Shown here in pieces: positions 174-63,900 of a DNA stretch of 64,000 nt. The first letter of the stretch is position 1, and every line of letters begins with the position of its first letter. A program made the translations under genes and the position numbers. The notes below the pieces were generated by a model, which was not told the origin of the DNA, searched no databases, and saw only the letters and a list, made by a program, of their open reading frames with translations. Origin of the DNA: Isurus oxyrinchus (taxonomy: Eukaryota); the NCBI GenBank assembly GCA_026770705.1, contig JANJGN010000557.1, positions 248,001 to 312,000 of the forward strand, written 5' to 3'.

Positions 174-213
174 ATGATCGGGAAATATTACTTCCTCCTG
201 TCACTTCTCCAAG
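174..213 (+). CDS. Gene A signal peptide exon (MIGKYYFLLSLLQ)
   Basis: ATG at 174, hydrophobic stretch, CAAG|GTAATA phase-1 donor. Ends in SLLQ like the gene B and D leaders. Confidence 0.8.
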
Positions 214-3200
214 GTAATATCATCGTCAGCTCAGACAGATTTATGGCTAATAGTCTTTGTAAAAGACCATTCTTATTGAGTGTGATTGGGAACCGATTCA
301 GCAGTGAGCCAGTGTACAAACTGACACCAAGTCCCATTCACCCATCACCCCTGTGCTCACTGATATACACTGACTCCCTGTCTGACAGCAGAATTGGAGG
401 AGAGCAGAGATCTCAGAGGGTTTTAGGGTTGGAGCAGGTTACAGGGATCGGGAGTGTAGAGGGGGGATGGTGGGGTAAGAAATCAATGATGATAATTTGA
501 AATTTGAGTCATTGCTGGACTGGGAGCCAGTGTAGGTCAGCCAGTGACAGGGGAGCGATCGGCTGAATAGAGAAACAGGGATAAAAACTGGGGAATGAGG
601 TCTATCCTGATGTTAGGACTCGGATAACAATGCCCTGAAATTTTGTGTCATTTGCTGATTTTAGTCAGGACTTCCCATGAAGACAACACAGCAGCTCCTA
701 GAATAGACAGGCTGTTCAGTGTCACACTTCCTGTCCATTCTCACCTTGCTAGATACTTCAATAAGGGAGCAAGATAACTGAAAGAGAGAAGGAAGGTAAA
801 GCTGTCTGTGTGTAAAACTGTCAAATATTCTGAGTTATCATGATTGTCTCTGACCTGCTGCAGAGTTTAAATTTCACAGAATCTGAGCACTTTGCAGCTC
901 AGAGAGAGACCATTGACTCACTGCCTGAAAGGCCGGTGGAAGCAGATTCAACAGGAACTTTCAGAAGGGGAACTGGATAAATACTTGAAGGAGACATTTT
1001 GCAGGGCTGTGGAGGAGAGAGCAGAGGTGACAGTGGGACTTATTGGACAGATCTTTCAAAGGTCCAGCACAGGCTTGATGGGCCAAATGACTTCCTTCTC
1101 TTCCAGATCATTCTGCAATCTGATAAATTAAGCCCCACATCAATAACTCTTAAGGCTCCTGCTGCAGGGATGGAGCTTTGAGAAGGACAGAGAATAAGAG
1201 GTTTCTGGTATCATTTTCATATTGTACTGAATCTTGCTGCCAGAATGTTTGGCCACCGCTGATCACCATGTTGTGTTTTTATAATGATATAAAGGTACCA
1301 GCCACTGATACGGAATTGGGTAAATACATTGTGGGTTCAGTTATTTAGAACAGGGACATGAGAACAGATATACAAGGATAGAAAGCTGGGAGACACCTGC
1401 AGCCAAACTGTGTGAGCTGTGTTCTGCTCACAGACCAAAGTGAAACTTGAACTGGATGGTGTTATCATCCCAGCTGATGTTACTACTGGGCAAGTCAGAT
1501 CCCAGGGTGGAGCTCAGCTTGATAGGTCCTAACTTTTATTTTTTATTTAGGAATGTGGAGTGCGGCTACTGAACAGAGTCACAGGAGTCATCTGATGAAC
1601 TTCTAACAAAAGAATAAAACACTTATTAAACTAGGAAAGACAAACGATATGACATTACTCCTTCACCCAGACCTATACATTTACAGTTTCATAAGGATAA
1701 CACAATTACAATAACTAACTTATACTCTCATGTTCACACTAAGTACACAGTCGATGTAAAACAGTAGACGACCTGGGGTCAGGGACACCACATTCTGAAA
1801 CCAAGTGACAGAACCCACTTGGAACAAATGCTCCGGGTCCCTCCTCAACGGACTCTAGACGCTTGTTACACCGTGAGGCAACTGGTCTAACGAAACTGCT
1901 TCTTTCACATGAGAGTTTCCAATCTCTACTCACCAAGTGCTCTCTTTGGAATCTTCTCCAACATGACACTTTCACTCAGACACCTTCCACACGGGTCCAC
2001 TTTCACTATTTCAAACTCTCCTTCCCATGTTCCTGCCCCCTGGATCGCCACGTGCATTCAGCCTTCCTTCCACGCCCTGTCTCTCCAATGCTCAGCCGTG
2101 TCAATGGAACACCATGGCTTCACATGGCCGTAGTAATGAGTCACCAACCTGTGGTGTCTCCTAGGATCTTCTGGCTTCTCGCAAGCCTAGTTTGCTTTGG
2201 GTCTGTGTCCTTTTGCCCATTCTCTTTTAGCTTGGATCCCTCCTCTGAACCTCAACCTTAACTTGACTTAACAGGACCTTGTCCAGATTCCTGATCTTCC
2301 TTGGACGAGAAGGTCTTCTTGGGCCCTTTCTCCTGTTCCACTCGATGGTTTTTGCTTCTTCTTTACTTTGGGACTGACTATCTGTCCCGCTCCTTTGCTG
2401 CTTCTCCTGGCAACTCCTTTCAACCAAACTGAAAGCACATTTCTGTTTTTCTCTGTCTCTGTGAGTCCCTCCCTCTGGATCACTGTTGCTTAGCAATAGC
2501 ACAGTTTCTTACACCTTGAATTTGTTTTGACTTCCCTTCAACAGTCACCAAACCCCATTAGATTGCTGGCTTCTATAAAAATGAAACTAAAAGTCAAGTT
2601 TCCCCCTTTCTTAACACACAAATACAGAAATCAAACTAAACTTGAACTTAAAGATAGACCTTATGCCTAACACACACAAATACACATAGAACTTACTTAA
2701 CCTATCCCCACTTCCTAAAAATCACATGACACACTTCCCCTCGAGTGATGTCATGCTGCTATCCCTGAAAGGCATATTACAACAGTGTTATCACTTGGCA
2801 GGTGATGTGTGCCAGGCAGACCAAGTCCATGAGAGAAAGGTGGTCACACGATCATAATGATTTTGCAATTTGTTTTTATTATGAGATGTGTGCACTGAAT
2901 TCAGAAGCAATAATTACTCTAGGAACTTTAGAGATTTGAAAATTAAATTAAAATACTTGCTCTGAGAATAAATGATATCATGCATGTACATGACACTACA
3001 ATTACCATTTTAATAATAATTCTTAAAATTCCGAAATAACCTGACTCCCAGTTACACTCCCTTTAAGGCAACGGTCCAAAAATAGAGTTTATATTTAAAA
3101 CAAACTCAGCAAGTTAACACAATATAAAAGCAATACCCTGCACAGAGGAATTCCAAGTGGCTTTTCCCCAACTTCAGTTCTGTTGGATAGCAGGCTTGTG

Positions 3201-6200
3201 CACAAATGCTAGTGGTTTCATTAAGACTATATCACACACTCCTGTTAGATCTTACATGGCATTCTGACACATAGCCTTTCATTCTCCCTGATAGATATAT
3301 ATTTCTCTCTTTGTAACATGAAAATTCTATTGTTCCAAATGTTTTTGAAACTGTATCTTCCTCATAACAAATTCTTTCGTGGTGCCCATATTGCCAGGAG
3401 CCTTTGAGAAAAATAAGCACATTCCTTAGTCTTGCTTATCTGGCTAGTTGTAAACAAACTAAGATTCCTTTGAAATCCAACAACCCCTTCATTGAAATAA
3501 AAATGCAAATTCTCTTCATACCTTCCATGCTAAGCAGCATCCATGTTTACTCAATAGCATGTCAAGCACCTAGCTCCTTTTGATCATTTTAAACTTCCAA
3601 TCTAATTAACTCCAAATGTACTTAAATCACATGCAGACCCATCATGCGTACCCCCATAAACCTACTTCACAATATACTATAAAATATTATGAAAATTATT
3701 ATACTTTCATCACAATAGGAACCACTGCCTTAGACACTGAGGATCTAGGACAGCTAGGCCAATTCATGATTCATGATGGTGATAATGGGGGAATTCTGAA
3801 GGCTCCTAATCCATTGTCCTAGTTTGTAAATCAGCAGTGAACTCACTTCAATTAGTGTGTCTTGTAGACACTGTGTTGGGTAGAAGACTGGCTTCACTAA
3901 ACAGGTTCCTGAGGGCCACGAGCCAATGTAGAATGAACTTGTCCACTCCTGTATCCAGGATTCTCTTCAATGTGTTGTGAAACATTGGGGCATTCATTGT
4001 GAGTCCAGACTGCAGCCACTGTGCCCCAGTGATGGAGGGGGTGGATTTTGAGTCTAGTGGATTGACAAAACATTCAGAGTTAAATATTGATATTTCTCCC
4101 CCTAGCTGGACTACCACAAGTGTGGAAAGGTGACACTCCACGAGAGGTGACAGCGCAGGAAGGTTCGTGTGTACAGATTCCGTGTCATTACAGCTACCCA
4201 TCATATTTAGTACCGAGATCACCTGTTGGAATCTGGTATATGAGAAGGAATTGGGAAACATGGTCTATAGCCTTTCACTCCAAGGATCACAGTCGCGAGT
4301 TACCACGGTTCCACAATCGGACCCGGCTTTCTGGAGACCTGAAAGATGGTGACTGTTCCCTGATTATAAACAACATCAGACGGGAAGATGCAGGATATTA
4401 TTTATTCAGAACAGATTTTGACAGCAGGAATAGATACAACGACCGTCCTGAAACCCAGCTTCATGTTTCTGGTAAGTGCTGTGTTATAATTACTCAACAA
4501 TTCACATCCAACACTCAATGGGAAATAATAGTGTTTGATTTGCTTGTTTTTTGGCCGTGTTAACCAGCGTCACTATTTTTAATGATTTGTCTATTTCTGC
4601 TCCCAGATCCATGAGCTTATTGTGTGTGATTGAATCCACATCATAGCTGTAACGTAAACCAAGCTGAGGGGTGATGACACCTCCCCCCTGAGTGAAGTGT
4701 CTCCTCCCCACTACACCTTCCACCCCTCACACTGTCTGTGTAATCTCCCGTCCCATCCCCAGCCTCTCTTTCCCCTCCAAAGTCCTGCAACGTGTTTCCA
4801 TCTCCCGAATCCGTTCCCATCTTTCCCGGAACTCCATGTTTGAATCCCTCCAATCAGGTTCCCACCCCAGCCACTGTGCTGAAACAGCTCTTATTTTTAT
4901 TGAGCAAATGCCAAGCCCCGATACCGAGCGAGAGCCTCCTCATTTGCTGAGTTTAAGGTGATGAGTCAGCCCCTTAGTCCGTAGACGGGATTCTCCTCGG
5001 TAATGTGCAGCCTTGTTTGTGTCTCTCCACAAGCGCATGAGGGGTTTGTACAGAGGCTGCAGCGCTGGAGGGGGTCTGCACAGGGGTCCTGGCCTGTCCT
5101 GAGCCAGTTTTAGCAAGGACAACTCTGGCCTTGGCAGCTGAAAGCCAGCCATTGGACAGACGGGGCCTGTCACAAGGAGCCTGTTAGTCACTCACCCCCG
5201 TGTCTCCTGTGCTCAGATCCAGACCATGTTGGCTGGTGGATCTGGCTCAGGAAGGGTCCTCCCCATGGGACCCCCAGAGGGAAGGTGGGTCGAGCGGGTC
5301 ACTCACTTGCATGTTTATTCTGCAGCTTTAATATTTTAAGAAGGTAAGAATGTAGGAACATAAGAAATAGGGACAGGAGCAGGCCATTCGGTCCCTCCAG
5401 CCTGCTCTCACTGATCTGGTTGCGGCCTTAACTCCATTTTCCTGCTTGTCCCCCAAACCCTTGACTCCCTTGTCGATCAAAAACCTGCCTCACTCAGCCT
5501 TGAGTCTATTCAATGGCCCAGTCTCCACTGCTCTCTGGGGAAGAGAATTCCACAGGCTAGCGCCCCTCTGAGAGAGGAAATTCCTCCTCATCTCAGTCTT
5601 AAATGGGAGAGTCCTCATTCCGAAACTGTGCTCCCTGGTTCTAGATTCCCCCACGAGGGGGAAACATCCTCCCAGCATCCACCCTGTCAAGCCCCCTCGG
5701 AATCGGATATGTTTCAATAAGGTCACCCCTCATTCTTCTAAACTCCAATGGATACAGCCCCAACCTGCTCAACATTTCCTCACAGGACAAACCCTTTAAT
5801 CCCAGGAATCAGCCCAGTGAAGCTTCTCTGAACTGCCTGTACACAATGATCCAGTTACAATCTCACTAACACCCTGTGCAGCTGTTGCAAGACTTCCCTC
5901 CTTTTATACTCCATCCCTTTGCAATAAAGGCCAACATTCCACTTGCCTTCCTCATTCCGTGGTGTTCCTGAATGCTGACTTTCTGTGATTCATGTACCAG
6001 GACACCCAGATCCCTCTGTACTGCATTCTGCAGCCTGTCTCCATTTAAATTATATCCTGTTTTTCTATTCATCCTGACAATATAATTTGTTGCCACTCTC
6101 CTCAGTATTGACCATCCCCCCAATTCAGCCTCATCTGTAAATATCGGGTTCAGTGGATCCACAAACCATTCAGAGTTAAATATTGAGATTTCTCTCCCCA

Positions 6201-9200
6201 GCTGAACCCTCGCAAGAGTGGAAAGGTGACAATCCATGAGAGGTGACAGTGCAGGAAGGTTCCTGTGTACAGATTCCATGTCATTACAGTTATCCATCGT
6301 GTCTGGAAAACCAACCGCGAGGTGGAGTCTGGTTTAATAATGAGGAATGGAGAACATCGTCTATAGCCTTTCACTCCAAGGATCACAGTCACGAGTTACC
6401 ACGGTTCCACCATCGGACCCGGCTGTCTGGAGACCTGAAAGATGGCGACTGTTCCCTGATTATAAACAACATCAGACGGGAAGATGCAGGACCTTATTTT
6501 TTCAGAATAGAATTTGACAATGGTCCGCGCTATAACTATTACCCTGTAACCCAGCTTCATGTTTCTGGTAAGTGCTGTGTTATAATTACTCAACAATTCA
6601 CATTCAGCACTCAATGGGAAATAACACAAACTGTGACATTTACGTATTAACACAAAACACAGCTTATTATAACACACTGTCTGATTCTCAATAACCTGGT
6701 GATCGCTTCCAATTCACTCCTAAAGCAACCTCTAATACTCACTTTAATATCAATGATTAAATGTATTGACTGTGTCCATCAATGTTATCAGGTTATCCAC
6801 TACTATCGATCTCTCTAATCCTGTCTCGAAGTCTGACTTAGCGACAGAAGAAAGATTCACATTTCTGTAGCACCTTTCACCACCTCAGCATGGACCAAAT
6901 CACTTCACAGCCAATGAGCTGATTCCTGAATTGTAGTTACTATTGTAATGTGGGAAACACAGCAACCAATTTGCACACAGCAAGCTCCCACAAATTGCAA
7001 AGTAAAAAATGGCCCAGATCGCTGAGTGAATGATGGGGTAGTGCACTCCAAACTCTGGTCTGCTCCACCACCCTCACCCACTATTATCAGTTCAAGTGTC
7101 TCGGAGTGAACGTGTATTAAGCTGAGAGACAGAAACACCAAAGTCTCAAAGCAGGAAATTCTCTCCTAATCATTGTAACCTCTCAGATCTGATATCATCC
7201 TTGTAAAAGTGCTTTTTCTTGTGGGACTGTGATTTCTATTTGAACTGATGCTTCACGTTATATTTCTCTAAAAGGATCCATTCTCTGTCTGTTAGATTTC
7301 ACAGATAAACCCACGATATTCCCTGCTGAAATTATTGCAGGAAAGCCTGTGGATGTAAGCTGCACCTTCAACACAACGTGCAATGGAACAGCAGCACCTG
7401 TCTTAACCTGGGACACTCCCACTGACGTACCTGGATCAGTCTCAAACACTGTAACTCAGCATGGTGTCACTCTGACCTATACTTCTGTTCTGACCCTGAT
7501 CCCATCACTCAAACACCACGGACACACTCTCAGCTGCAGAGTGAGATATCCATCTGTTTCATCGGAGCGGACCCTCGTACTAACTGTGCAAGGTAAGTAC
7601 AGACACCCTTCATTCTACATCAGCACTCCCTCAGCGCTGACCCTCTGACAGTGCAGCCCGATCTCAGTATCCACATTCTCAGACCTCTCAAAGTGCTTCA
7701 CAGTCGATAGAAGTTAACTGATCTTTATTTGATTGTTGCTGAATGAAGAGACAAGCTGTCTAAACTTTACATCTCACACACATTATTTTCCATGGCAACA
7801 CCTCCTCCAATCAGAGACCACTTGCTGATTAACCAGCACTCTCTTCCCTTTAAATATAAATTGTTGTTCACTTTCTGTTGGTAAACCTGCAATCTGCCTT
7901 GTTGAGTCCGGTCCTGACATCTGAATATCACAATGAACAGAACAAGTTCCAACAATGAGCTGTGGTTGGTGATTCCTCACGTTACATCCAGGGACACTGG
8001 AGACTATCAGTGTGCTCAGAGAATGAACATGGAGCAGTGGAGGGGTTCATAACCATCACTGTGGAACGTTAGTTAAGGCAAACTTCAACATCTCTCTCAG
8101 ATTGAAACACTACAAAAACACACATAAATATCCAGCCTTAAATAGACACCTGCAGACAAACAATCCCACATCTATGAGCACACACAAAGGCACACTCACA
8201 AACAAACACACTAGCACATACTCCCCTGTGGATTACCTGACCTCCCTCAGTGCTGCACCGGAGAGTTGACCTGGATTCTGGGATTTGTGTTCCCTTTCAT
8301 ATTTATGGAAGAATATGGAAATTGCAAAGTCTATTACAGACACTCAGATGCACAGAGTTACTCACAGATACTCTCTGCCTCTCCAACTCTCTATCCTACT
8401 TTAAGAACCTTCCTGAAATCTAACTCTTTGACCAGTCACCTGTCCCAATTCCTCCTTACGTGATTTTGTGTGAAATTTTGTTTGAGTATCTGAGAGTAAG
8501 AGGGAAGTGGAGAGGTTAAGGAAGGGAATTCCTGTTGCTGAAAAGCTTACATCAAGTTCTCAGCTTTCCAGTGCCCATTTTTCACATGATGTCCATGTTC
8601 ATAATGGGGATTGCCTATGTAAACGTCACGCTGTAGTTACACTCTCCCACCAGTGGTAGCACGGTAACACTTAACCCTTGCATCTCCAAGCTTTTCAAGC
8701 AATTTCACTTCCTAATTTGCTACTATTCACCTCAACCATTCCCTGTGGGAGCGAGTTCCACATTCTCCCCTCTCTCTGGGTAAAGATTGGAACTGTTTAT
8801 TAAGCGGGGTGTGTAAGTCCGTGGGGGAGTCCATCTCGATCCTGCCCGATTCGCACACGCGTCCGAGATGGATTTCCACCCTGCACTAAACGTTTCCAGA
8901 ATTTTCTACAGCACAATCCTGTACACAGCGATGGAGAGAAACATTGGACAGAGAGTCCAACAGCACAATGATCCATTCTCACCAATGTTCCACGCTAAGG
9001 GGAAAGTTCCGATTGTCCACTCTTAGAGTGTTTACAGTGAAAACATTCATTCCACATTGAATCCCAGTGGATGGGTCAATATTACAGCAAATGTTGCAGT
9101 GATATGAAGCTTGATTGTTCAGCCAGAGTGAGAGATTGAAAGCGGAGAGTCAGTGATGATTTCTTTCTGTGTGTTCTCTAGACAGTGGAGGAGAGATTCT

Positions 9201-9321
9201 GCACGTGATCCTGATCCTGGGAATACGAGCTGTGATATTCCTTGTGGCTGTGGTTATCACTATCGCTGGAGTCTGTGTCTGGGAGAGACAAACAGTGAAA
9301 GGAAGTCGACAGACTGTTTGA
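174..9321 (+). CDS. Gene A: activating-type Siglec-like receptor. In-frame model 174-213, 4106-4471, 7296-7592, 9182-9321 (280 aa; leader-V-C2-TM). May be partly pseudogenised.
   Basis: All four exons have GT/AG boundaries in phase 1 and sum to 843 nt with no stop. Siglec V-set motifs are present and the TM contains Arg. The model requires skipping two damaged exons (6202-6567 and ~7927-8067). Confidence 0.75.
1460..2784. mobile_element. Probable solo LTR-like element in gene A intron 1
   Basis: Block bounded by TGTT...AACA with no coding capacity. No clear target-site duplication. Confidence 0.4.
2786..3714. mobile_element. Solo LTR-like element (~0.9 kb family)
   Basis: TG...CA termini; clearly homologous to 31950-32859 and 60588-61500. 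Confidence 0.65.
4106..4471 (+). CDS. Gene A V-set exon V1 (intact)
   Basis: ccctAG acceptor and G|GTAAGT donor; 366 nt. SCVQIPC and DCSL give the Siglec cysteine pattern. DAGYYLFR keeps the essential Arg (AGA 4408-4410). Confidence 0.92.
5350..6070 (-). mobile_element. CR1-type LINE 3' fragment
   Basis: FKTEMRRNFLSQRGASLWNSLPQRAVE and QRDLGVLVHESQKVS motifs of the CR1 ORF2 C-terminus. Confidence 0.85.
6202..6567 (+). pseudogene. Gene A V-set exon V2 with an in-frame stop
   Basis: Same length and flanks as V1. TGA at 6237-6239 where V1 has CGA. DAGPYFFR keeps the Arg (6504-6506). Confidence 0.9.
7296..7592 (+). CDS. Gene A C2-set Ig exon
   Basis: gttAG acceptor and G|GTAAGT donor; 297 nt. 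DFTDKPTIFP..VSCTFNTTC..LTW..HHGHTLSCRV, with the extra Cys typical of Siglec domain 2. Confidence 0.9.
7927..8067 (+). pseudogene. Gene A broken second C2 exon (3' half only, frameshifted)
   Basis: ITMNRTSSNNELWLVIPHVTSRDTGDYQCA, then a 1-nt frameshift, then ENEHGAVEGFITITVE with a C|GTTAGT donor. The 5' half and acceptor are not recognisable. Confidence 0.8.
9182..9321 (+). CDS. Gene A transmembrane and short-tail terminal exon with intramembrane Arg
   Basis: ctctAG acceptor. SGGEILHVILILGIRAVIFLVAVVITIAGVCVWERQTVKGSRQTV*; Arg is CGA 9226-9228; no Tyr in the tail. Confidence 0.85.
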
Positions 9322-9704
9322 AGCTTTGTACAGCAACAATCTGGTCAGTCAGTGCGGACAAATAACGTGTGATGTTGTGTTAAGTTGTAATGAAACTGGT
9401 CAGTGTCCTGGTTAGAATCATCTCCGTATCATCGAGTCATTCCAGCAATGGAGGAGGACATTTGGCCCATTGAGTCTATGCTGTCTCTCTGTAAAGCAAT
9501 CCACTCAGTCCCATCCCCCGCTCTATCCCCGTATCCCTGCAAATTTATTTCCAATTTCCGTCCAATTTCCTTTTGAAATTGTTCATCGAATAGGAATGAA
9601 CAGAAATGTGACGTCGCTAAACTCTGTTCTCTGATTGGAATGAGCTTTCTGAATGCTGCACCTTTTTCATGCTGCGATAGATTGTAAGAAGCATTTGGCT
9701 TATG

Positions 9705-9710: not shown

Positions 9711-10057
9711 ATTACATTGATTAACTCAAGTGATTAAAATGCTCAGCCTGTTCTGTAGATATTTAAAGATTAAAATTCTTGTTTTGCTGCAAAATACTTG
9801 GCTCAAAGACATTACTTCCTGTTGTCACGTTTTCCAATCAGATGAATTCCTCTGTCCATCTTTATAATAGAAATTTCCAATGTAAACATGTCACATTGTA
9901 GCTGCACACACTTGCCAGTGGCTGGTGTGATACCAAAGCTGTCTTGCTGCAGAGAAACAGCGAGAAATATTCCTGTTGTGTGCATGAACTTCATGTTAGC
10001 ATGAGACACAGGCATCAGATGCAATTTTGTGCAATTTGTACAATGTTCTTTAGACAG

Positions 10058-10405
10058 CACAGCACTCCCTCAGTTCAAACCCTCCAACAGTGCAGGACTC
10101 CCTCAGATCAGACCCTCCGACAGTGCAGCACTTCCTCAGTTCAAACCCTCCGACAGTGCAGCTCTCCCTCAGTTCATACCCTCCGACAGTGCAGCACTCC
10201 CTCAGTTCAAACCCTCCAACAGTGCAGCACTCCCTCATTTCAGAGCCTCCGACAGTGCAGCACTCCCTCAGTTCAGAGCCTCCGAAAGTGCAGCATTCCC
10301 TCAGTTCAGACCCTCTGACAGTGCAACACTCCCTCAGCTCAGACCCTCCGACAGTGCAGCACTCCCTCAGTACTGAACCTCCGACAGTGCAGCACTACCT
10401 CAGTT
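10058..10405 (+). repeat. 33-bp minisatellite, TTCAAA/TTCAGA variant
   Basis: About 10 units of CAGTGCAGCACTCCCTCAGTTCAAACCCTCCGA. Confidence 0.95.
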
Positions 10406-15983: not shown

Positions 15984-16027
<44 letters not shown>

Positions 16028-24435: not shown

Positions 24436-24930
24436 AAGGGGCTGAATGGCCTCCACCTGTTCCTGTGTAACGGGCATCAGTGGCTGAATGGGCCTCGTCC
24501 TTTTTCTGTGTAACAGGCTCAATGGGGCTGAATGGGCCTCCTCCTGTTCTTGTCTAACAGGCTCGAGGGGGCTGAATGGGCCTCCTCCAGTTCTTGTGTA
24601 ACAGGCTTGAGGAGCTAAATGGGCCTCCTTCCGTTCCTGTGTAACAGACATCAGTGGCTGAATGGGCTTGCTCCTGTTCCTGTGTAACAGTCTTGAGGGG
24701 GCTGAATGGCCTCTTCCTGTATCTGTGTAACAGGCTCAATGGGCTGAATGGCCCCCTTCTGTTCCTGTGTAACAGTCTCGAGGGGGCTGAATGGGCCTCT
24801 TCCTGTTCCTGTGTAACAGGCTCGACGGGCTGAATGGCCTCCTCCTGTTCCTGTGTAACAGGCTTGAGGGGGCTGAATGGCCTCCTCCTGTTCCTGTGTA
24901 ACAGGCTCAAGGGGCTGAATGGCCTCCTTC
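24436..24930. repeat. ~43-44-bp minisatellite
   Basis: GGGGCTGAATGGGCCTCCTCCTGTTCCTGTGTAACAGGCTCGA, about 11 units. Confidence 0.92.
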
Positions 24931-24934
24931 TGCT

Positions 24935-25190
24935 CTGTAAACTTGTTGTGATACTGTAACTGCCTCTTTGGTTTCATTCAGCTGAATCTTCAGCTCTTCA
25001 GTCTCTTCCTTGTATCTCTTGCCTTCCTCCTGGAACATTGGACATGGTTGGGTCTTCCCTGCCAACTGTTTCTTCAGTTTGCTCAGAGCGGCACAGAATT
25101 CGCTTTCTTTCTCTTCAGGATTTTCCAGTGGAACCAACTCTGACCTGAGGGACACTTGCAGCCTGTGAGGATGCTTCAATTCTTCAAACT
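24935..25190 (-). pseudogene. Isolated coiled-coil coding fragment, UACA/RAI14-family-like
   Basis: LQVSLRSELVPLENPEEKESEFCAALSKLKKQLAGKTQ..QEEGKRYKEETEELKIQL resembles my recollection of the UACA coiled coil. Not searched. Confidence 0.5.
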
Positions 25191-25194
25191 CATT

Positions 25195-28402: not shown

Positions 28403-28462
28403 ATACGGAAGGATTTAAGACCTGCTCATGATTTCAGCTCAAAACCCAGGCAGATTCTCCCC

Positions 28463-53166: not shown

Positions 53167-53434
53167 CTTCAGTTCCTCATCTAAATGGAAAATGATAAAG
53201 ACAGAGACTTTTTCATAAATTGTCCCCAGCGTTTCTTCCTCAAACAACAACAACTTGTGTTTAAATGGCACCTTTCAGTGAATTAAACAGCCCCAGAGAA
53301 TAAACTAATGTCAAGACAAGGAAGGAGAGATTGAGAAGGGACATCGCAAACTGATTCACCAAACACGGCAAAAATTCATTGGTCCCTCACTCCCTGTGCT
53401 GGGTGTCCAGCTTTTTCTCTCAGTGAGTTTAGCC

Positions 53435-55583
53435 CTCACAATCTCTCTCTATCACACTCTTCTGCTCTATCTCTCTCTCTCTCACATAGATTCTCTCTCT
53501 AACACTCACAATCTCTCTCTATCACACTCTTCTGCTCTATCTCTGTCTCTCTCACAGACACATTCTCTCTATAACACTCACAATCTCTCTCTATCACACT
53601 CTTCTGCTCTATCTCTCTCTCACACACACACATTCTCTCTCTAACACTCACAATCTCTCTCTACTGCACTCTTCTGCTCTATCTCTCTCTCACACACACA
53701 CACATTCTCTCTCTAACACTCACAATCTCTCTCTATCACACTCTCCTGCTTTATCTCTCTCACACACACACACACATTCTCTCTCTAACACTCACAATCT
53801 CTCTCTATCGCACTCTTCTGCTCTCTCTCTCTCTCACACGCACACTCTCTCTAATATTCACAAGCTCTCTCTATCACACTCTCCTGCTTTATCTCTGTCT
53901 CACACACACACATTCTCTCTCTAACACTCACAAGCTCTCTCCATCACACTCTTCTGCTCTATCTCTCTCTCACACACACACATTCTCTCTCTAACACTCA
54001 CAATCTCTCTCTATTGCACTCTTCTGCTCTATCTCTCTCTCTCACCCACATTCTCTCTCTAACAATCACAATCTCTCTCTATCACACTCTTCTGCTCTCT
54101 CTCTCTCTCACACACACGCATTCTCTCTCTTACACTCACAATCTCTCTCTATCACACTCTTCTGCTCTATCTCTCTCACACGCACACATTCTTGCTCCCT
54201 CTCCCAAACACACACTCTCTCGCACTGACACTCTCTCTCACACAGACACACTCTCATACACACTCTCTCACACACACAATCTCTCTCTCAAACACACACT
54301 CTCGCACATTCTCTATCTCAAACACATACATACTCACTCACACAAACTCTCTTTCTCTCACAAACATTCTCAAACACACACTCTCGTACAGACAATCTCT
54401 CACACACACACTTTCGCTCACACACACTCTCACACACACAATCCCTCTCTCTCAAACACACACTCTCGCACAGACATTCTCTATCTCAAACACATACATA
54501 CTCACTCACACAAACTCTCTCTCTCTCACAAACATTCTCAAACACACACTCTCGTACAGACTCTCTCTCACACACACTCTTTCGCTTACACACACTCTCT
54601 CACACACACAATCCCTCTCTCAAACACACACTCTCGCACAGACATTCTCTATCTCAAACACATACACACTCTCACTCACACACACTCTCTCTCTCTCAAA
54701 CACACTCTCTCTCAAACACACTCTCTATCACACATGCACACAGTCTCTATCAAACACACACACTGTCACACACACACACTCTCACACACACACTTTCTCT
54801 CACACACTCTCTCTCACACATGCACACACTCTGTCAAACACAGACACTGTCAAACATACACACTGTCACACACACACACTCTCTCACACACACTCTCACA
54901 CATGCGCACAGTCTCTATCAAACAAACACACTGTCACACACACACACTCTCACACACACACTCTCTCTCACACACACTCTCTCACACATGCACACATTCT
55001 GTCAAACNNNNNNNNNNNNNNNNNNNNNNNNNNNNNNNNNNNNNNNNNNNNNNNNNNNNNNNNNNNNNNNNNNNNNNNNNNNNNNNNNNNNNNNNNNNNN
55101 NNNNNNNNNNNNNNNNNNNNNNNNNNNNNNNNNNNNNNNNNNNNNNNNNNNNNNNNNNNNNNNNNNNNNNNNNNNNNNNNNNNNNNNNNNNNNNNNNNNN
55201 NNNNNNNNNNNNNNNNNNNNNNNNNNNNNNNNNNNNNNNNNNNNNNNNNNNNNNNNNNNNNNNNNNNNNNNNNNNCACACTCTCTCTCTCTCAAACATGC
55301 ACACTCGCCCTATTTCAAACACACTCTCGCACAGTCACATACACACACTCTCTCACACTCACACACACTTCCTCACACACACACTTGCTCCCTCTCTCAA
55401 ATATGCACACACTCTCAATCTCTCCCATGCACACTGTCTTACATGCAGTCTCTCACATTCTCTCTCTCTCACACACTCTCTCACACACTTTCTCATGCAC
55501 ACTCTCTCACATTCTCTCTCTCTCACACTCTCTCACACACACAGTCTCTTGCTCTCTCTCCCACACACACTCTCTCTCTCTCT
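53435..55583. repeat. Expanded CT/CA compound microsatellite, containing the gap at 55008-55275
   Basis: Paralogue of 27725-28402, about 3 times longer. Confidence 0.92.
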
Positions 55584-55646
55584 GACATGGAAGGTTGTTA
55601 TTTTAAGACCTGCTCAAGATTTCAGCTCAAAACGCAGTTGGACACA

Positions 55647-55980
55647 CAGTGAGGGAGTGCTGAGGGATGTCAGAATTGTTGGAGGGTCAGTACTGAGGAA
55701 GTGCTGCACTGCCAGAGGGTCAGTACTGAGGGAGTGCTGCACTGTCAGAGGGACAGTATTGAGGGGGCACAGCACTATCAGAAAGTCAGTACTGAGGGAG
55801 GGCTGCACTGTCGGAGGGACAGTACTGAGGGAGTGCTGCACTGTCGGAGGGACAGTACTGAGGGAGTGCTGCACTGTCAGAGGGTCAGTACTGAGGGAAT
55901 GCTGCACTGTCGGCGGGTCAGTACTGAGGGAGTGCTGCACTGTCAGAGGGTCAGTACTGAGGGAGTGCTGCACTGTCAGA
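55647..55980 (-). repeat. 33-bp minisatellite
   Basis: About 10 units; paralogue of 28463-29125. Confidence 0.95.
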
Positions 55981-57281
55981 ACTGTCGTATTTTAGATGAT
56001 GATAGAAATTAGAAACATGCCTCGTTTATAATTCTATATCAGCAGCTCAAAATAACTAGATTAGTCCTGTACATTTCACTTCACTGTAAATTGATTGAGG
56101 CTTCATTCCCTTAGAAACCAGGCTCGTGTGATGACTATTTTTAAATAATGTTTGTTATTTGGAACAAGGGGCCATGCCTGAACAGATAACTGTCGGATCA
56201 AGCAGCTGGGTTTTTTCTTGTACCTGGCTTCATTCAGATGTTTGCTGCTGGACATGAGATCATTAATGTGTGAATGTAGAATCGGAGTCACCTCAGTGAA
56301 CAGCAGCATTGGTTGAACAGCCTGATCTGCAATAAGAACTGCTGAACACAATGTCCGTTCAGAACAGCTCGGTCCCCGATCAGAGAAACAGCCTCAGACA
56401 GAACCAACTGACGCTGGAATCCATACAATTCATCAACGTGTTGGGAGTTAGTTTGATGTCGGAGATGGAGTGTTACTGGGAAGGAGGGAACCCGTCAGGA
56501 TGAACAGCTCGATGTACGACAAGGAAAGGATGAGCTAAGAGGGGTTGGTTACGGACAGACGGAGCGTGTGAAGACTCAACAAGCTAATGGCAGGTGAAGA
56601 GCTGGAAAGGTGTCTTTTCAACACAAGGTTTAGACACAGAACTTGATGTTTGATCGGGTATTTCAAACCAGAGAAACTCTTTCAGGGTGAATGGACCTTG
56701 TCAATAATCCATCCAGCCAACCTCGCCTGGAGATTAGTCCAATATTAGACACTAAACCGAGACCCCCGTCTGCCCTCTTGGGCGGGTGTGAAAGATCCCA
56801 CAGCCACTATTTGGAGGAAGAGCAGGGGGGAGATCTCCCCGGTGTCCTGGGACCAATATTTATCCTTCAACCAACATCACCAAAAACAGATGCTCACATT
56901 GCTGTTTGTGGGAGCTTGCTGTGCGCTAGTTGGCTGCTGCGTTTCCTACATTACAACAGTAACCACACTTCGAAAAAAGGGTGAACTCAACTGTAAAGTG
57001 TTCTGGGACATCCAGAGACCATGCTGTACAGAAGAGATTTGACAGGAGCAGCAAGTGTTTTACTTACAGGAGAATGAGTCCCCAGGGTTGTAGAGTCAAT
57101 CCTGTCAGATGAATGTCTAACTGGAGACACTTCAGGGAGCTGATCTAATTCTGGAAATGTTCAGTTTACCAGGATCGGAGGAGAGATGATCTTCCTCTCC
57201 TGACTGCATCGGACACGAGGTGAACTGGCTCTGGGAGGAGGGTCAGTGTTAACCCAGTTTTTCTGTGTTTGAGGGAGATGT

Positions 57282-57316
57282 GAAACTGGGGAAGTCACGT
57301 GGTTTATTGGTGTGGT
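57282..57316 (-). promoter_or_regulatory. Candidate promoter or enhancer upstream of gene B
   Basis: Same ETS, E-box, CCAAT and RUNX cluster as 30428-30462. Confidence 0.4.
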
Positions 57317-57458
57317 CACTCCATGTCTTTATTTGGTGCAGCACTCGTTTAGTTCATGTCATTCTTTCAATGCTACAAAACCACAGCGCATTCTGGACTA
57401 TTTCTGCCTGACCTGCTGTCAGATACACACAGTCTCACAGAGAGGCACAAACACACAC

Positions 57459-57505
<47 letters not shown>

Positions 57506-57724
57506 TACAACAAATAAACATACACAAACACTGCACACGAACACACAAACACACACACACACACACATACTCACAACCAGAAACACACACACACACACAC
57601 ACGCACAAAAACACACACACATACAGGCACACACTCATACACACAAACACACACATGCTCAAACACATACACACACACATACACTAGAATCTCTCTCTCA
57701 CAAACACACATACACACGCGTAGA

Positions 57725-57984
57725 NNNNNNNNNNNNNNNNNNNNNNNNNNNNNNNNNNNNNNNNNNNNNNNNNNNNNNNNNNNNNNNNNNNNNNNNNNNN
57801 NNNNNNNNNNNNNNNNNNNNNNNNNNNNNNNNNNNNNNNNNNNNNNNNNNNNNNNNNNNNNNNNNNNNNNNNNNNNNNNNNNNNNNNNNNNNNNNNNNNN
57901 NNNNNNNNNNNNNNNNNNNNNNNNNNNNNNNNNNNNNNNNNNNNNNNNNNNNNNNNNNNNNNNNNNNNNNNNNNNNNNNNNNNN
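57725..57984. other. Assembly gap
   Basis: Run of N. Confidence 1.
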
Positions 57985-58659
57985 TTCTCAGAGTGAAACC
58001 TCCCTGAATATGGCTGGTGTGTTTAACATTTGAGACACTCAGACAGGATGTGGTTAAAACGTGAAGCCACAAGGAGCGAGTGTCTTTCCCAGTGACTGTC
58101 ACTCTGTGGGTTTCCTGTGGGTTTCTGTGGGCTTAAGTGAAAACATGAGATGGATTCACAAGACACAGACTCGGAGTTGGCATTGTCCCACCACCACTCG
58201 CTGGTACAGATATTCTGCAGTCATGTGGTTAGCTGCCAAAGACTCAGAGGGTGGACGAATGATGGACAGTGCCATGCTCATTATCACATCCATTTGCCCC
58301 CTTGCCACCCGTCCATCAGCAGGTGCCCACACTGTTGACCCTTGCCCAGGTCCCTCGCAGCTGCTCACTGTCACGACATAACAGCTTGAGTCAGAGGGAG
58401 GAAACCGGTAGGGCTGTGGGTGGTGACGGAGCACCGCGTGTTCCCACAGAGTCACAGCCACAACATGCCTGGCACCGAGCATTCTTGCAGAGCCGGTCTC
58501 TCCACCAAACCTTCCCAGTAATCACTGGTGATGCAGTGAAAATGGTTCGTGTGGACAAGCACACAAAAGTCAACGGGAGCTTTGTAATCTGAATGGACCG
58601 TGACCCTTTTCACCTTACCTTTCCGTTGATAGAATGTCACACAGCGGGGACGCTGGGGA

Positions 58660-58870
58660 AGGGCTGGGTCCAGCTGCTCCGTGCTCTCCTGATAGGACCT
58701 TCCTGTTTTGGTGGAAGAGATCCAGAAGAGGAGAGCAGCCCTGTATTCGGCTGGTCACCGTAATGATCCTGCAGCAACCAAGAGGGCCTGGGTTCAAATA
58801 GCGGCTGTGGTGAGTGCAATACGAGCCCATCAGCGCTGGACAAAGTTCAATGAGCTGCTGCGTTCTCTCT
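58660..58870 (+). mobile_element. Harbinger-type Myb/SANT-like domain relic
   Basis: LVEEIQKRRAALY..TKRAWVQIAAVVSA..QRWTKFNELLRS. Confidence 0.7.
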
Positions 58871-59509
58871 ATTGCCCATATCAAAGCCTTTAATCATCAT
58901 AAACCCCTCGATTAGATCACCCCTTAATCTTCGAGACTCGAGGGAACACAAGCCTGGTCTGTGCAACCTGTCCTCGGGATTTAACCCTTTCAGCCCCGGG
59001 ATCATTCTGGTGAATCGGTACAGCATCCTCTCCATGGACAATATATCCTTCCTAAGCTGCAGGCCCCAGACCTGAACGCAGTGCGGGGACCTTTATAAAA
59101 CTGTGCCAGACACTTCAAAAATCTCTTCAATTCAACCTTGTAAACGCAGTAGGAAAAATCCCATGGGGCCATTGTATCTTAGCAACATCATAAACTTGGC
59201 CGAAAGAATCCCCCTGGTCACCCCTGAGTGTTACTCATATTGTAAACACAACGTATAGAGCTCCTCCAGTCTCTGAGAAGCAAAACTAGGACACTAGAGC
59301 ACCACCACTGGCAGGAGGCTGTAATTACAGTGTGACATGTTTACATGGGAATGTTCCATTACCAATGACACAGGAATTTAAATAATCAGAAGGGCATGTG
59401 ACAACAGGAAGTGATGCCTTGGAGAATGGAATTATTCATAAGAGTATGTGTTTAATTTGATAAAAATGTACAGAAATGTCAGAGCATTTTAGTTACTTCT
59501 TTATTTAAT

Positions 59510-61600
59510 TCATTCATGGGATGTGGACGACACTGGCTAGGCCAGAATTTATTGCCCATCCCTAATTGTCCTTGAGAATATGGTGGTGAGCTGCCTTCTT
59601 GAGCTGCTGCAGTCCCTGTGGTGTATGTACACCCACAGAACTGTTTGGGAGGGTGTTGCAGGATTCTGACCCAGCGACAGTGAAGGAACGGTGATATATT
59701 TCCAAGTCAGGATGGTAAGTGGCTTGGAGGGGAACTTCCAGGTGGTGGTGTTCCCATGTGTTTGCTGCCCTTGTCCTTCTAGATGGTAGTGATCATGTGT
59801 TTGGAAGGTGCTGTCTAAGGAGGCTTGGTGAATCCCTGTGTTGCATCTTGTAGATGGTACACACACTGCTGCCACTGTGCGTCAGTTGTGGAGGGAGAGA
59901 ATGTTTGTGGATGGGGTGCAAATCAAGCGGGGCTGCTTTGTCCTGGACGGTGTCGAGCTTCTTGAGTGTTGATGGAGCTGTACTCATCTAGGCAAGTGGG
60001 GAGTATTCCAACACACTCCTGACCTGTGCCTTGAGGTTGGTGGACAGACTTTGGGGAGTCAGGAGGCGAGTTACTCACCACAGGATTCCCAGCCTCTGGC
60101 CTGCTTTTGTAGTCACAGTATTTATATGGCTAGTCCAGTTCAGTTTCTGGTCAATGTTAACCCCCAGAAAGTTGATAGTGGGGGATTCAGTAATGGTGAT
60201 GCCATTGGACGCTAAGGGGAGATGGATATATTCTCTCTGGTTGGAGATGGTCATTGCCTGGCACTTGTGTGGCATGAATGTTGCTTGTCACTTGTCAGGC
60301 CAAGCCTGGATATTGTCCAGGTCTTGCTGCATTTGGACATGGACTGCTTCAGCATCTGATGAGTCATGAATGATGTTGAACGTTGTGCAATCATCAGCAA
60401 CCTTCCATAATTCTGACCATCTGATAGAATGAATGTCATTGATGAATCAGCTGAAGATGTTTGGGCCTAGGACACTACCCTGAGCAACTCCTGCGGTGAT
60501 GTCCTGGAATTGAGATGACTGACCTCCAACAACCACAACCACCTTCCTTTGTACTTGGTATGAATCCAACGAGTGGAGAGTTTTCCCTGTGACATGACAT
60601 GGCAGATGATGTGTGCTTGGTGCTCCAAATCCACAAGGGAAAATTGGTCATTCTATCACAATAGTTTTGCAATTTGTATTTAATACAAGAAGCGTGCACT
60701 GAATTCAGGAGTAATGAGTTGACCACAACCTTTAGAGATTTTAAAAATTCGATTAAGATATTTATTAACAAAATAAAAGATTTCAAGCACATACATAATG
60801 CCACAGTTAGTTACAGCTAAAATAAATTCTCAAATTCCTAATTAACCTGACTCCCAGTTACAGAGCCCGTTTAAGGCAACAGTCCAAAATAAGATTTTAG
60901 ATTAAAAACAAATCCAGCGAGTTAACACAGCACACACTTGACACTGGAATTCTAAATGGATTTCTCCAACTTTATTTACTGAACATAACAGACTTATGCA
61001 CAAATGCCTGGAGGCTTCTTCAAGCCTGTTTCACACACTCCTGTTAGATCTTACATGGCCCCCAACATAGCCTTTCATTCTCCTTTATAAAAGTTTCTCT
61101 CTCTTTGATATGTAAATTCCATTGTTCCATATGTCTTTGGAACTGTACCTTTCCCATAATATAAACTTTCATGTTGCCAATATTGTCAATGAAGTTTGGG
61201 TAAAATTAAAAAAAAACTCCTTAGCTTTGCTTGTTGGGCTTGTCCTAAACAGACCGACATCCCTTTGAAATCTAAACAACCCCTTCACACCTTACATGCT
61301 AAGGCAGACTCCATGTGTTCTCATTAGCATTTCAAGTACATTTCTACATCTAGCTTCTTTTGATAATCTCAAACTTGCAGTCTACCTGACTCCAGATGTA
61401 ATTAAACCACACAGACAGACACACATCTACACTCACACCCAGAAACCTAGTTTACAACAAACCAGGAAAATATTATGCAAACAATTATACTTTCGTACCA
61501 CCCCTGATTCACACTGACTCCAGTTTTGCTCGGGCTCCTAGAGGCCACACTCGGTTAAATGCAGCCTTGATGTCAAAGGCAGTCACTCTCACCTCACCTT
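59510..61600 (-). mobile_element. LINE (CR1/L2 clade) 3' part with a nested solo LTR at 60588-61500
   Basis: NFLGVNIDQKLNWTSHIN. The insert TGTGAC...TACCA splits the LINE sequence TTTTCCC|CCCCTGATTC. Confidence 0.88.
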
Positions 61601-61792
61601 GTATTAACAGATGTAAAATTATAGATAATTCATAAGCTTCTCACAATCTTTTACAGCATGGAAAAAGGTACAGCATTCAGAAAGCTCACTCAGAACCAAT
61701 AAAAAAAAAGTTGAGCAACATCATATTTCTGTTCATTACTATTTGACCATGTTGGCTGCACACACCCCACAGCCCCGCTCCCTGTTTCGCAC

Positions 61793-63900
61793 TCAGTTTT
61801 TCTGGAACCTGATCTGTGTGTATTCCGTGTCCTCGCTCCTGTGCACAGTCCTGTCACCGCTGGGCAGCTTTGAAAAGTTGATGTTGGCGTAGAGAATCTC
61901 GTCGGGTTTGTCAGGATTCCCATGTCCAGCATCGCCTCCCACTGGACCTTCAGAGAGATCCCAGGGGAGCTGGGGTCTCCCCCTCACTAGTTGTGTCTCT
62001 GGTTGTGTTCCGGGGCTCAGTAATCAGCACGTTCTGTTTACCCTACAGAGAAATGGAAACAGAAGACATCCTCACATCATTTACTGGCACTGATAGGGTT
62101 AAATTATTGTGCAGCCTCGTTAGTGTCAGTCGTGGCTCAGAGCGTTTAACCCTTTTTTTCAAAGACATCCAAAGAACCTCACGCAAATGAAGAAATTTTT
62201 GTTGAAGGGTGTCACTGCTATAGTGTTGGAAATGTGGCCGTGGGATCTTATACGACCACCTGAGAGGGTAAACATGGTCAGCATTATACAACTGTTCTGA
62301 AAGACAGCACCTTGAACACTACAATGTACTCTCAGTGCTGGCTTCTGACAGTGCGGCACTCCCTCACAACTGCCTCTTCGAGAAGGCAGCACCACTTGAA
62401 TATTGACTATGCGACAGTGCAGCACCCCCTCAGTACTGACCCTCGCACAGTGCAGCACCCCCTCAGTACTGACTCTCCGACAGTGCAGCACTCCCTCACT
62501 ACTGACCCTCCGACAGTGCAGCACTGCCTCAGTACTGACACTCCGACAGTGCAGCACTCCCTCAGTACCTACCCTCCGACAGTGCAGCACTCCCTCAGTA
62601 GTGACCCTCCGACAGTGCAGCACTCCCTCAGTACCTACCCTCCGACAGTGCAGCACTCCCTCAGTACTGACCCTCCGACAGTGCAGCACTGCCTCAGTAC
62701 TGACACTCCGACAGTGCAGCACTCCCTCAGTAGTGACCCTCCGACAGTGCAGCACTGCCTCAGTACTGACACTCCGACAGTGCAGCACTCCCTCAGTACC
62801 TACCCTCCGACAGTGCAGCACTCCCTCAGTAGTGACATCAGGTGCCTTGTGATTATTGTGTTCAGGTCTCTGGACAAAGAGCGAGTGATGGAGGGAGAGA
62901 GGGGGGAGGGACCGAGAGTCAGTATTACCTACTGAGCCATTGCTGACTCCACAGGTAGATATCTGTGGGTAACTGGGTTGGGAATCTGGGACACGTGTTG
63001 TCTACACACTGATATTGAAGCTTTGGAGTGAGTGTAAACAGCTCCTGTACCTGGTGCTTCACAGAGAGTGGACTGGGGCTCAATACAATGTCACTGGTCC
63101 CTAAAACTCTCTCCTCCATCGCTGTCTTTCTCCTGCAATAACACAATATCACACTGTGGTTATCATATAGCAGAGAGTCAGTGCAGCACAGACACAGAGC
63201 CCACTGTAACCTTACACCAACGACTGGACTGTCTCCAGTTGCAATAAGGGATATCAGTGTGATATCACTATAATGGAAGTGTGTCATGTGATCCAATTTT
63301 GCCTGACCCCTCCATCCCTGCTCTTCCCCCCGTAGCCCTTCAAATTTTGTCCCTTCAAGTATTTATCCAATTCCCCTTTTGAAAGTTCCTATTGAATCTG
63401 CTTCCACCGCCCTTTCAGGTAGCACCTTCCAGATCACAGCAACTGATTATTATTCATCTGGATAACGGGCAATGAAAAACACTCTCTGGATAATAAGGGA
63501 CAAAGTGACCAGTTACGGAGAGGCATCTGGCGCTTAACACAAGGGAAACAATCACCGACTTCAGGAAAGAACATTGAAGCAAATGTTTATCCAGGAGTAA
63601 TCGTGCAGAGTGAGGAATCTCTGGGCTCGTGATCGTTTACCTGGATACAGGACAATGAAAGGTTCTCTCCGGATCAGAGTGGACACAGGGATCACTTACA
63701 GAGAGGGACCTGGTGCTGATCCCAAGGGAAACAATCACCGACTTAAGGAAAGAACATTGAAGCAAATGTTTATATTAAAATCATGTTAAATCTTCAGACT
63801 TACTTTCTCACACAGATGAAGATGAAGATTCCAGCCAGGAAAACACTCAACATGATCCCAGCCGTGAACAATCCTACTGTCCATTTACTGGAGTCTCTAC
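61793..63900 (-). CDS. Gene C: 3' end of a gene B paralogue (TM 63900-63804; cytoplasmic exons 63132-63051, 62869-62837, 62042-61793). The last exon is frameshifted. Ig exons lie beyond the window.
   Basis: Exons align with gene B. The last exon is 250 nt against 249 in B, giving TGA at 61952-61950 before ILYANI and TEYTQI. Confidence 0.85.
62340..62835 (+). repeat. 33-bp minisatellite in a gene C intron
   Basis: About 14 units; paralogue of 33780-34085. Confidence 0.95.

Follow-up and report, generated by a model that had tools for sequence, protein, structure and literature searches.

Activating-type and inhibitory Siglec-like receptor genes in a duplicating gene cluster of a lamniform-type shark

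Introduction

Do sharks have Siglec-like receptors of both signalling kinds, activating and inhibitory, and do neighbouring receptors of opposite kind form pairs in the sense known from mammals? The question is raised by a stretch of 64,000 nucleotides from Isurus oxyrinchus (contig JANJGN010000557.1, positions 248,001 to 312,000 of the forward strand), which as a whole is called the window below. A preliminary description of this stretch had recognized a cluster of Siglec-like receptor genes in what was probably a cartilaginous fish: an activating-type gene A, two inhibitory genes B and C, and a further V exon, D. It regarded the family as expanding and as built independently of the mammalian one. 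We find that the window contains one intact inhibitory gene (B), one activating-type gene with a damaged exon (A), one frame-shifted tail (C) and one truncated remnant (D). We consider it likely that the whole window is part of a big, tandemly duplicating Siglec-family cluster of a lamniform-type shark, shaped by birth-and-death evolution.

Results

Membership of the Siglec family

Judged by their V and domain-2 (d2) sequences, the genes of the window belong to the Siglec family, which agrees with the preliminary description. Searches were run exon by exon. The V exons match the Pfam families V-set and Ig_CD22 (gene A V1, V-set 2.8e-14 and Ig_CD22 2.9e-9; gene B V, V-set 2.3e-7). Among solved structures, gene A V1 matches sialoadhesin (E 3e-15), MAG (E 1e-13), Siglec-5 (E 1e-12) and Siglec-10 / CD33 (E 2e-11), followed by Siglec-15 (E 1.7e-6) and, marginally, CD22 (E 3e-3). 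The V domain of gene B matches MAG (2e-14), sialoadhesin (2e-11) and Siglec-5 (9e-11), and CD22 was not among the 60 of its 98 PDB matches that were listed. For both genes, sialoadhesin and MAG score at or above the CD33-type V domains. In bits, the V domain of gene A reaches 31 with Siglec-15 and 59 with sialoadhesin, and it is on such V-domain scores that neither A nor B appears to be a one-to-one orthologue of Siglec-15 or CD22.

The diagnostic residues are in register as well. When gene A V1 is aligned with sialoadhesin, both strand-B cysteines, the strand-E cysteine and the arginine equivalent to R97 coincide. The V-domain cysteines (SCVQIPC/DCSLII in A, SCVVIPC/NCSVRI in B) are aligned to their counterparts in sialoadhesin and MAG, and the extra d2 cysteine (VSCTFNTTC in A, IICKCLDTC in B) aligns with VSCMVPDNC of MAG. 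The C2 exon of gene A matches domain 2 of MAG, CD33, Siglec-10 and Siglec-5, this extra cysteine included. The Siglec cysteine pattern (C-x4-C plus strand E in V, C-x5-C in d2) is thus present in both A and B, and the disulfides that it implies are predicted ones. The arginine that contacts sialic acid in Siglecs is kept in both V exons of gene A (LFRTD in V1, FFRIE in V2, aligned to sialoadhesin R97), and the V exon of gene B and that of the remnant have a tyrosine where MAG R118 and sialoadhesin R97 align.

Gene A and its transcripts

The exons of gene A, like the other features of the window, are listed in Table 1. Of the 13 residues of its leader, 12 match the N-termini of the shark proteins P0003, P0009 and P0012, and its Ig exons are all of phase 1-1. 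V2 resembles V1 (85% nucleotide identity, with a like acceptor and donor context), and the TGA in V2 corresponds to CGA in V1. With V2 left out, leader, V1, C2 and transmembrane (TM) exon add up to 840 nt, or 280 codons, in a clean frame to the stop. The last exon shares 80-83% identity with the TM exons of P0006 and P0014. It encodes a membrane span, VILILGIRAVIFLVAVVITIAGVCVW, with an arginine about 8 residues deep in a hydrophobic stretch of about 25, followed by the tail ERQTVKGSRQTV, which is 13 residues long and free of tyrosine, exactly the anchor that had been described for this gene. Between C2 and the last exon lies a decayed Ig exon, where the tblastn high-scoring segment pairs are split over two frames and match the second C2 exon type of the relatives.

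Contigs of four public RNA runs (X4-X7) were compared with positions 3700-9650 of the window. The GT..AG joints 6567/7296 and 7592/9182 are found in runs X5, X6 and X7, which come from three studies. Both joints, V2 donor to C2 acceptor and C2 donor to TM acceptor, are the predicted ones, and the decayed exon is left out of them. In run X5, one contig joins 7378-7590 to 9180-9343 without mismatch, 377 nt being identical to the window. In these sharks, the existence of a spliced A-type transcript, V-C2-TM(Arg), is certain. Where contigs cross the V2-C2 joint, they depart from the window at 7347 and at 6528 and 6531, the latter two changes turning GPRY into GPSH as in other sharks, and contigs on the decayed exon, which probably come from paralogues, have an extra T after 8014. 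Part of the RNA therefore stems from paralogues or other alleles. The X6 and X7 contigs also have G at 9286 and, at 9212, an A that replaces Leu by Gln (VIQILGIRAV). VIQILGIRAV is found in two Carcharodon models as well, P0160 and P0164, which suggests that these runs are from Carcharodon or that the contigs are from a paralogue.

Could gene A, then, be a dying copy, a pseudogene in this haplotype, with the spliced RNA coming from near-identical paralogues elsewhere in the genome? The codon that is TGA here is Arg in Carcharodon P0178, the V2 exon of the window reads GPRYNYYP where its relatives have GPSHNYYP or GLSHNYYP and where RNA contigs carry the PSH-giving changes, and a frameshifted Ig remnant lies within the gene. 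On the other hand, V1, C2 and TM exons are intact with good splice sites and yield the clean frame given above, the X5 contig fits the C2-TM joint of the window perfectly, a 71-nt contig is an exact match to the variable part of V2, and the AG at 6239-6240 is a candidate for an in-frame alternative V2 acceptor. We regard the pseudogene explanation as doubtful, and favor a gene with one damaged exon, of whose copy here a full protein would depend on the skipping of V2 or on an alternative acceptor such as AG 6239-6240. Of the two V exons of gene A, V1 is thus sound and V2 is interrupted.

The two V exons also form a mosaic when compared with each other (4108-4470 against 6204-6566), with a synonymous divergence of 0.58 for the C-C' block and 0.43 for the F-G block, but 0.06 in between. 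Synonymous and nonsynonymous differences per site (pS and pN) are both high in these two blocks and low between, and there is no sign of positive selection in V1/V2. The mosaic points to patchwise exchange or conversion over simple divergence.

Gene B and its Arg-less head

Gene B is intact, with seven Ig domains and a reading frame of 2406 nt (802 codons) that closes with a stop, and in both A and B the exons have AG/GT sites in the correct phase throughout. Exon for exon, its chain is that of the Cetorhinus maximus RefSeq models P0201 and P0198 except for the number of C2 repeats (V 93% and 90% identical, domain 2 87-88%, and the CRDxSKW-TM junction and tail alike). Relatives of the gene B type were recovered among the matches of a search with Carcharodon P0032. 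Its TM exon is 69-79% identical to those of P0003 and P0032, and its last exon 77-85% identical to other shark tails. The tail ends in DDLLYANINFSKLPSGDRTVHRSEDTEYTLIGFQKN before the stop, with LLYANI, an immunoreceptor tyrosine-based inhibitory motif (ITIM), followed in frame about 20-23 residues on by TEYTLI, which resembles an immunoreceptor tyrosine-based switch motif (ITSM). A 42-nt mini-exon after the TM exon (35.2 kb) was considered and rejected, since the shark homologues pass directly from the TM exon to the first cytoplasmic exon.

The stalk of gene B is made of five intact C2 repeat exons that all have the same acceptor (...GAAAG) and donor (T/GTGAGT). They diverge by 7.5%, against 12.1% for the introns, and their pN/pS is 0.52, which indicates moderate constraint. 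P0201 and P0198 have one such repeat, so the length of the stalk varies between genes and species.

The tyrosine of gene B (YYFYVD) is found in P0201 and P0198 too, and the Arg-less head has therefore been kept between species and is not a recent defect. Lacking the canonical arginine, gene B probably does not bind its ligand in the canonical manner. A further step would be to suppose that receptors of the B type are no longer lectins at all and have a protein or otherwise non-sialylated ligand, or serve as adhesion molecules or spacers of variable length. The alignment against MAG and sialoadhesin and the presence of the same Arg-to-Tyr change in two Cetorhinus paralogues would fit such a loss. 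Some Siglecs, however, possess non-canonical sialic-acid binding sites, and we give the loss of lectin function even chances.

Relatives in other sharks

A HMMER search with gene A V1 gave 1238 matches, 31 of them below 1e-30. The ten close matches that are named are all shark RefSeq models, from Scyliorhinus canicula, S. torazame, Cetorhinus maximus, Mustelus asterias, Hemiscyllium, Stegostoma, Chiloscyllium and Carcharodon. A search with Carcharodon P0032 added over 100 models, from rays and skates as well as sharks. The C2 exon of gene A shares 96% identity with Carcharodon P0032 and 93% with Carcharodon P0018, which together with the 93% identity of gene B V to Cetorhinus places the source shark close to Lamniformes. 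The cartilaginous fish of the preliminary description can accordingly be named as a shark whose closest relatives in these searches are Carcharodon and Cetorhinus.

Two signalling modules recur in these proteins. The first is the Arg-TM module, (V/I)ILILGIRA(V/G)IF... followed by 13-17 tail residues, carried by Carcharodon P0160, P0164 and P0178, S. canicula P0181 and P0197, S. torazame P0216, Chiloscyllium P0014, and P0006. Its exon has been kept across three shark orders (in four other shark species), with GIRAV near-invariant; a search with the Arg-TM exon alone returned 5 proteins in its length range and added nothing to the known carriers. Among these, P0178 (270 aa) has the order V2-type-C2-TM(Arg), and P0160 and P0164 have V-V-C2-TM(Arg). 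The second, found in many sharks, is the inhibitory module, a neutral TM (LLTAGIMLSVFLAGI...) followed by LLYA(N/S)I and TEYAQI.

The RefSeq shark models (Carcharodon P0178, P0160 and P0032; Cetorhinus P0201, P0198 and P0003) have the same exon chains as the genes of the window, end in an Arg-TM or an ITIM tail as these do, and are 80-96% identical to them exon by exon. They differ in being automatic predictions under borrowed mammalian names: the close matches are called Siglec-8/10/11/12/13/14, CD33-like or hemicentin-like, and the distant ones, no more consistently, CD22-like, sialoadhesin-like or hemicentin-like. The system is already visible through gene prediction in many shark genomes, and what is new here is its description, of which our literature searches found none in print.

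A pair or two neighbours

The V domains of A (V1) and B are only 31% identical, the wide divergence that the preliminary description had noticed, and this makes A and B neighbours and not a classical pair. Highly similar ectodomains, the strict feature of paired receptors, are found instead when A-type genes are compared with inhibitory genes from other sharks: Carcharodon P0032 carries an A-type V (81%) and C2 (96%) on an inhibitory TM and tail. Similar heads with opposite tails thus exist in the family, among A-type genes and not between A and B. The proposed activating/inhibitory cluster holds in that both signalling types are present, and fails in the pairing of A with B in the mammalian sense.

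We lean towards the explanation that A and B, though neighbours, are unrelated and come from two old subfamilies of Siglec-like genes, and that the inhibitory partner of A lies elsewhere in the cluster, in the form of a gene with an A-type ectodomain. The low V identity and P0032 both speak for this, as does the fact that the gene B type has been kept as a lineage of its own in Cetorhinus. Co-expression of A and B on the same cells, and action in a common pathway, would nonetheless be compatible with the data, the sole link examined between the two being their adjacency.

Gene C, the remnant and the duplicated landscape

Gene C is a sister of gene B, with a tail that this assembly shows frame-shifted. 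Compared with gene B and P0003, its last exon has one additional T at 61963, which leads to a TGA at 61952-61950, upstream of ILYANI and TEYTQI, so that gene C as assembled is without inhibitory motifs and an in-frame ITIM/ITSM tail is left in gene B only. The uncharged TM and ITIM/ITSM exon that had been ascribed to B and C are complete in B; in C the TM is as described, and the motifs are present but out of frame.

The V exon at 26.6 kb, gene D of the preliminary description, was rejected as a separate receptor gene. It consists of a copy of the gene B leader and the first 290 nt of the V exon, and similarity stops abruptly at 26302, the boundary of a duplication. The rest of the V exon and B-like downstream exons were looked for in 1-26302 and none were found, which makes this a dead fragment, truncated by the duplication, and not a third gene. 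Gag-like ORFs at 24200-26339 (minus strand) abut the break of the cut V exon; a Pfam search with them gave no match, and a 42-nt repeat region lies amid them at 24.4-24.9 kb.

A segmental duplication with 88-97.5% identity, seen when the window is compared with itself, gave rise to B and C plus the remnant. Together with the array of C2 exons and the duplicated V exon, it bears out the view of an expanding family, and what the window chiefly shows is the turnover of a Siglec-like family. In the duplicate copies 31086-33514 and 59723-62158, a (TG)n tract and a gap (30847-31033; 57725-57984) stand at corresponding places. The right-hand duplicate has about 1.7 kb extra between the gap and the common sequence, and sequence may accordingly be hidden by the size estimated for the left gap. 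All three runs of N are intergenic, and continuity over them is thus irrelevant to the reading frames of the gene models.

The remaining features are of a general kind. The G+C content of the window is 47% and the observed/expected ratio of CpG is 0.30, which is vertebrate-like. A 33-nt minisatellite occurs at no fewer than six places (at least 6), on both strands, in introns and between genes, and reads ...LSTDPLTVQHS... in one frame. The remnant of a Harbinger/PIF-type transposase (DDE_Tnp_4, Pfam E 1.2e-5) lies at 37295-37835 on the plus strand, within the long intron of gene B between the last C2 exon and the TM exon, and fragments of long interspersed nuclear element (LINE) reverse transcriptase are found at 12.8-13.2 kb and 31.4-32.0 kb.

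Table 1. Positions of the genes, exons and repeats of the window, counted from its first letter.
Feature	Position	Strand	Remarks
Gene A leader exon	174-213	+	MIGKYYFLLSLLQ; phase-1 donor G/GTAATA
Gene A V1 exon	4106-4471	+	Intact, 366 nt, phase 1-1; Siglec Cys pattern; Arg in YYLFRTDF
Gene A V2 exon	6202-6567	+	Arg kept (PYFFRIEF); in-frame TGA 6237-6239
Gene A C2 (domain 2) exon	7296-7592	+	Siglec d2 C-x5-C motif; Pfam C2-set_2 1e-7
Decayed Ig exon remnant	7918-8066	+	3' half only; 1-nt frameshift; skipped in RNA
Gene A last exon	9182-9321	+	DSGGEILHVILILGIRAVIFLVAVVITIAGVCVWERQTVKGSRQTV and stop; Arg CGA 9226-9228; stop 9319-9321
Gene B leader	53166-53121	-	MGEVGLILIFISLLQ; donor G/GTACAA; matches MGVVGLILIFISLLPG of Cetorhinus P0201
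Gene B V exon	52300-51944	-	357 nt; Siglec Cys pattern; Tyr at place of sialic-acid Arg (YYFYVDVEG)
Gene B domain-2 C2 exon	48949-48662	-	IICKCLDTCPDNHPNLTW; MAG domain 2 match 1.8e-4
Gene B C2 repeat 1	47476-47219	-	258 nt
Sixth, truncated C2 unit of gene B array	45760-45707	-	Exon stub, cut at 45707
Gene B C2 repeat 2	44686-44429	-	258 nt
Gene B C2 repeat 3	42988-42731	-	258 nt
Gene B C2 repeat 4	41290-41033	-	258 nt
Gene B C2 repeat 5	39608-39351	-	258 nt
Gene B TM exon	35363-35267	-	CRDCSKWTVGLLTAGIMLSVFLAGIFIFICVRK; uncharged span LLTAGIMLSVFLAGIFIFICV at 35334-35272
Gene B cytoplasmic exon 1	34401-34320	-	RKTAMEERVSGTRDIALTPRSLSVKHQ
Gene B last exon	33398-33150	-	ITIM LLYANI 33254-33237; ITSM-like TEYTLI 33185-33168; stop
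Gene C 3' part	63900-61796	-	TM exon 63900-63804; cytoplasmic exon 1 63132-63051; last exon from 62042
Gene C uncharged TM	63871-63809	-	LFTAGIM...
Gene C ILYANI + TEYTQI	61897-61811	-	Out of frame
Remnant gene start, leader copy	27457-27412	-	
Remnant gene start, V fragment	26591-26302	-	99% identical to gene B V
Duplicated 470-bp block	4056-4528 and 6152-6624		85% identity; self-comparison
Segmental duplication	26302-35463 and 52011-64000		88-97.5% identity; window self-comparison
Tandem array, ~1.7-kb units	38875-47886	-	Self-comparison
33-nt minisatellite sites	10050-10400, 28470-29125, 33750-34115, 50160-51810, 55650-55980, 62330-62840		
N runs	30847-31033, 55008-55275, 57725-57984		In micro-/minisatellite DNA, intergenic; 0 of 3 within an exon or gene body

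Discussion

The exon structures, family membership, motifs, splicing of the A type and conservation in other sharks described above were observed, and they lead us to suggest how the two receptors would work. Gene A would be a small receptor of the order V(-V)-C2, its tail free of signalling motifs, whose arginine would pair, by analogy with Siglec-14, -15 and -16, with the acidic residue of an adaptor bearing either an ITAM (the tyrosine-based activation motif of immunoreceptors) or YxxM. Gene B would be a receptor of seven Ig domains with a neutral span, and its ITIM and ITSM-like tail, once phosphorylated, may recruit phosphatases of the SHP type and thereby damp signalling.

Which adaptor gene A would use is a separate matter. 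Recruitment of DAP12 is proposed purely by analogy with mammalian Siglec-14, -15 and -16, and the arginine might instead pair with an FcR-gamma-, DAP10- or CD3-zeta-like or shark-specific adaptor, or serve retention or assembly only. An arginine at this depth in its span is compatible with several adaptors, and our literature searches yielded no paper showing DAP12 in sharks. Against this, the near-invariance of GIRAV over three shark orders argues for a specific partner, and human Siglec-14, which likewise has a TM arginine, signals through DAP12. We give the use of another adaptor, or of none, somewhat less than even chances.

Several findings weigh against the picture of a working activating and inhibitory system in this window. 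The V2 exon of gene A contains a nonsense codon, the V domain of gene B is without the sialic-acid arginine, and the tail of gene C is frame-shifted. The RNA contigs that cross the V2-C2 joint with mismatches may stem from a paralogue or another allele, and the RNA support as a whole comes from the gene A region, 3700-9650. No joint with V1, such as one from V1 to C2, is among the RNA joints listed, besides which there are ten further joints. A survey of 2014 reported no FcR-gamma in the shark data then available (PMC4016189).

Close counterparts of gene A among known Siglecs are Siglec-14 and Siglec-16, which combine a V domain carrying the essential arginine with one or more C2 domains, a basic TM residue and a short tail free of motifs, and which, like gene A, are clustered with ITIM-bearing relatives. 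The TM exon of gene A is unrelated to theirs in sequence and common to several shark orders. In the primate pairs Siglec-5/14 and Siglec-11/16, moreover, the V domains are near-identical through gene conversion, in contrast to the low identity between A and B. Siglec-15 resembles gene A without V2 in its V-C2-TM order and basic TM residue. It differs in having Lys and a longer tail, and its V match is far weaker (1.7e-6 against 1e-12 to 3e-15 for sialoadhesin, MAG and Siglec-5), and by V-domain score gene A is not a Siglec-15 orthologue.

For gene B, the CD33-related Siglecs (CD33, Siglec-5, -7, -9 and -10) provide a close likeness, with a proximal ITIM (LLYANINFSK), a distal TEYxxI and the same V/d2 cysteine pattern. 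Unlike them, gene B has a V domain that scores best against MAG and sialoadhesin, lacks the arginine, and has seven Ig domains of which five come from recent exon duplication. CD22 shares with gene B the seven Ig domains and the inhibitory tail. The stalk of gene B, unlike that of CD22, is a recent array, present as 1 copy in the Cetorhinus models, and the CD22 tail has more tyrosine motifs. Human Siglec-12 (Siglec-XII) is an ITIM-bearing Siglec with an Arg-less V domain, and in this it is like gene B; in its two tandem V-set domains it is like the A-type genes and P0160 and P0164. Its loss of the arginine concerns another lineage and another substitution, and the shark Arg-less state has been kept between species.

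The preliminary description held that this family was independently built, which our results do not support. The ordered tail pattern xYAxIxFSK and, about 20 residues on, TEYxEI also occurs in non-shark Siglec-like proteins of the hit set, such as turtle P0045 (LHYASVDFSK...TEYSEI) and the further matches P0064, P0140, P0098 and P0145, each of which is weak alone (E 0.005-2). The recurrence of the same order of ITIM and TEYxxI, in the same FSK context, suggests a common tail module over a new invention, short of proof. The Arg-TM exon, kept over three shark orders, has no evident counterpart outside sharks among the proteins of the hit set.

Full-text literature searches combining Siglec with sharks, elasmobranchs, Chondrichthyes, cartilaginous fish and species names found no paper on shark Siglecs. 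The whale-shark genome paper merely lists Siglecs among gnathostome gene families (PMC8455134). In a study of teleosts, fish regularly had only Siglec-1, CD22, MAG and Siglec-15, and the inhibitory CD33-related Siglecs were lacking (PMC7226832). We put forward, tentatively and as the less probable reading, that elasmobranchs possess an old and large CD33-related-like Siglec system in which the Arg-TM and ITIM/TEYxxI modules have been shuffled onto differing ectodomains, namely Arg-bearing heads, Arg-less heads and stalks of one to many C2 exons. If the tail module were homologous to that of the amniote CD33-related Siglecs, the design would come from the jawed-vertebrate ancestor and would have been lost in teleosts, and this, if true, would overturn the view of CD33-related-type Siglecs as a mammalian or tetrapod invention.

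In conclusion, the Siglec-like genes of sharks evidently number in the dozens and include inhibitory tails as well as an activating-type anchor, which contrasts with the picture drawn from teleosts and places the on/off design of the Siglecs, or a convergent copy of it, at the base of the jawed vertebrates. The family also offers natural experiments, in its heads with and without the sialic-acid arginine, its stalks of variable length and its conserved Arg-TM.

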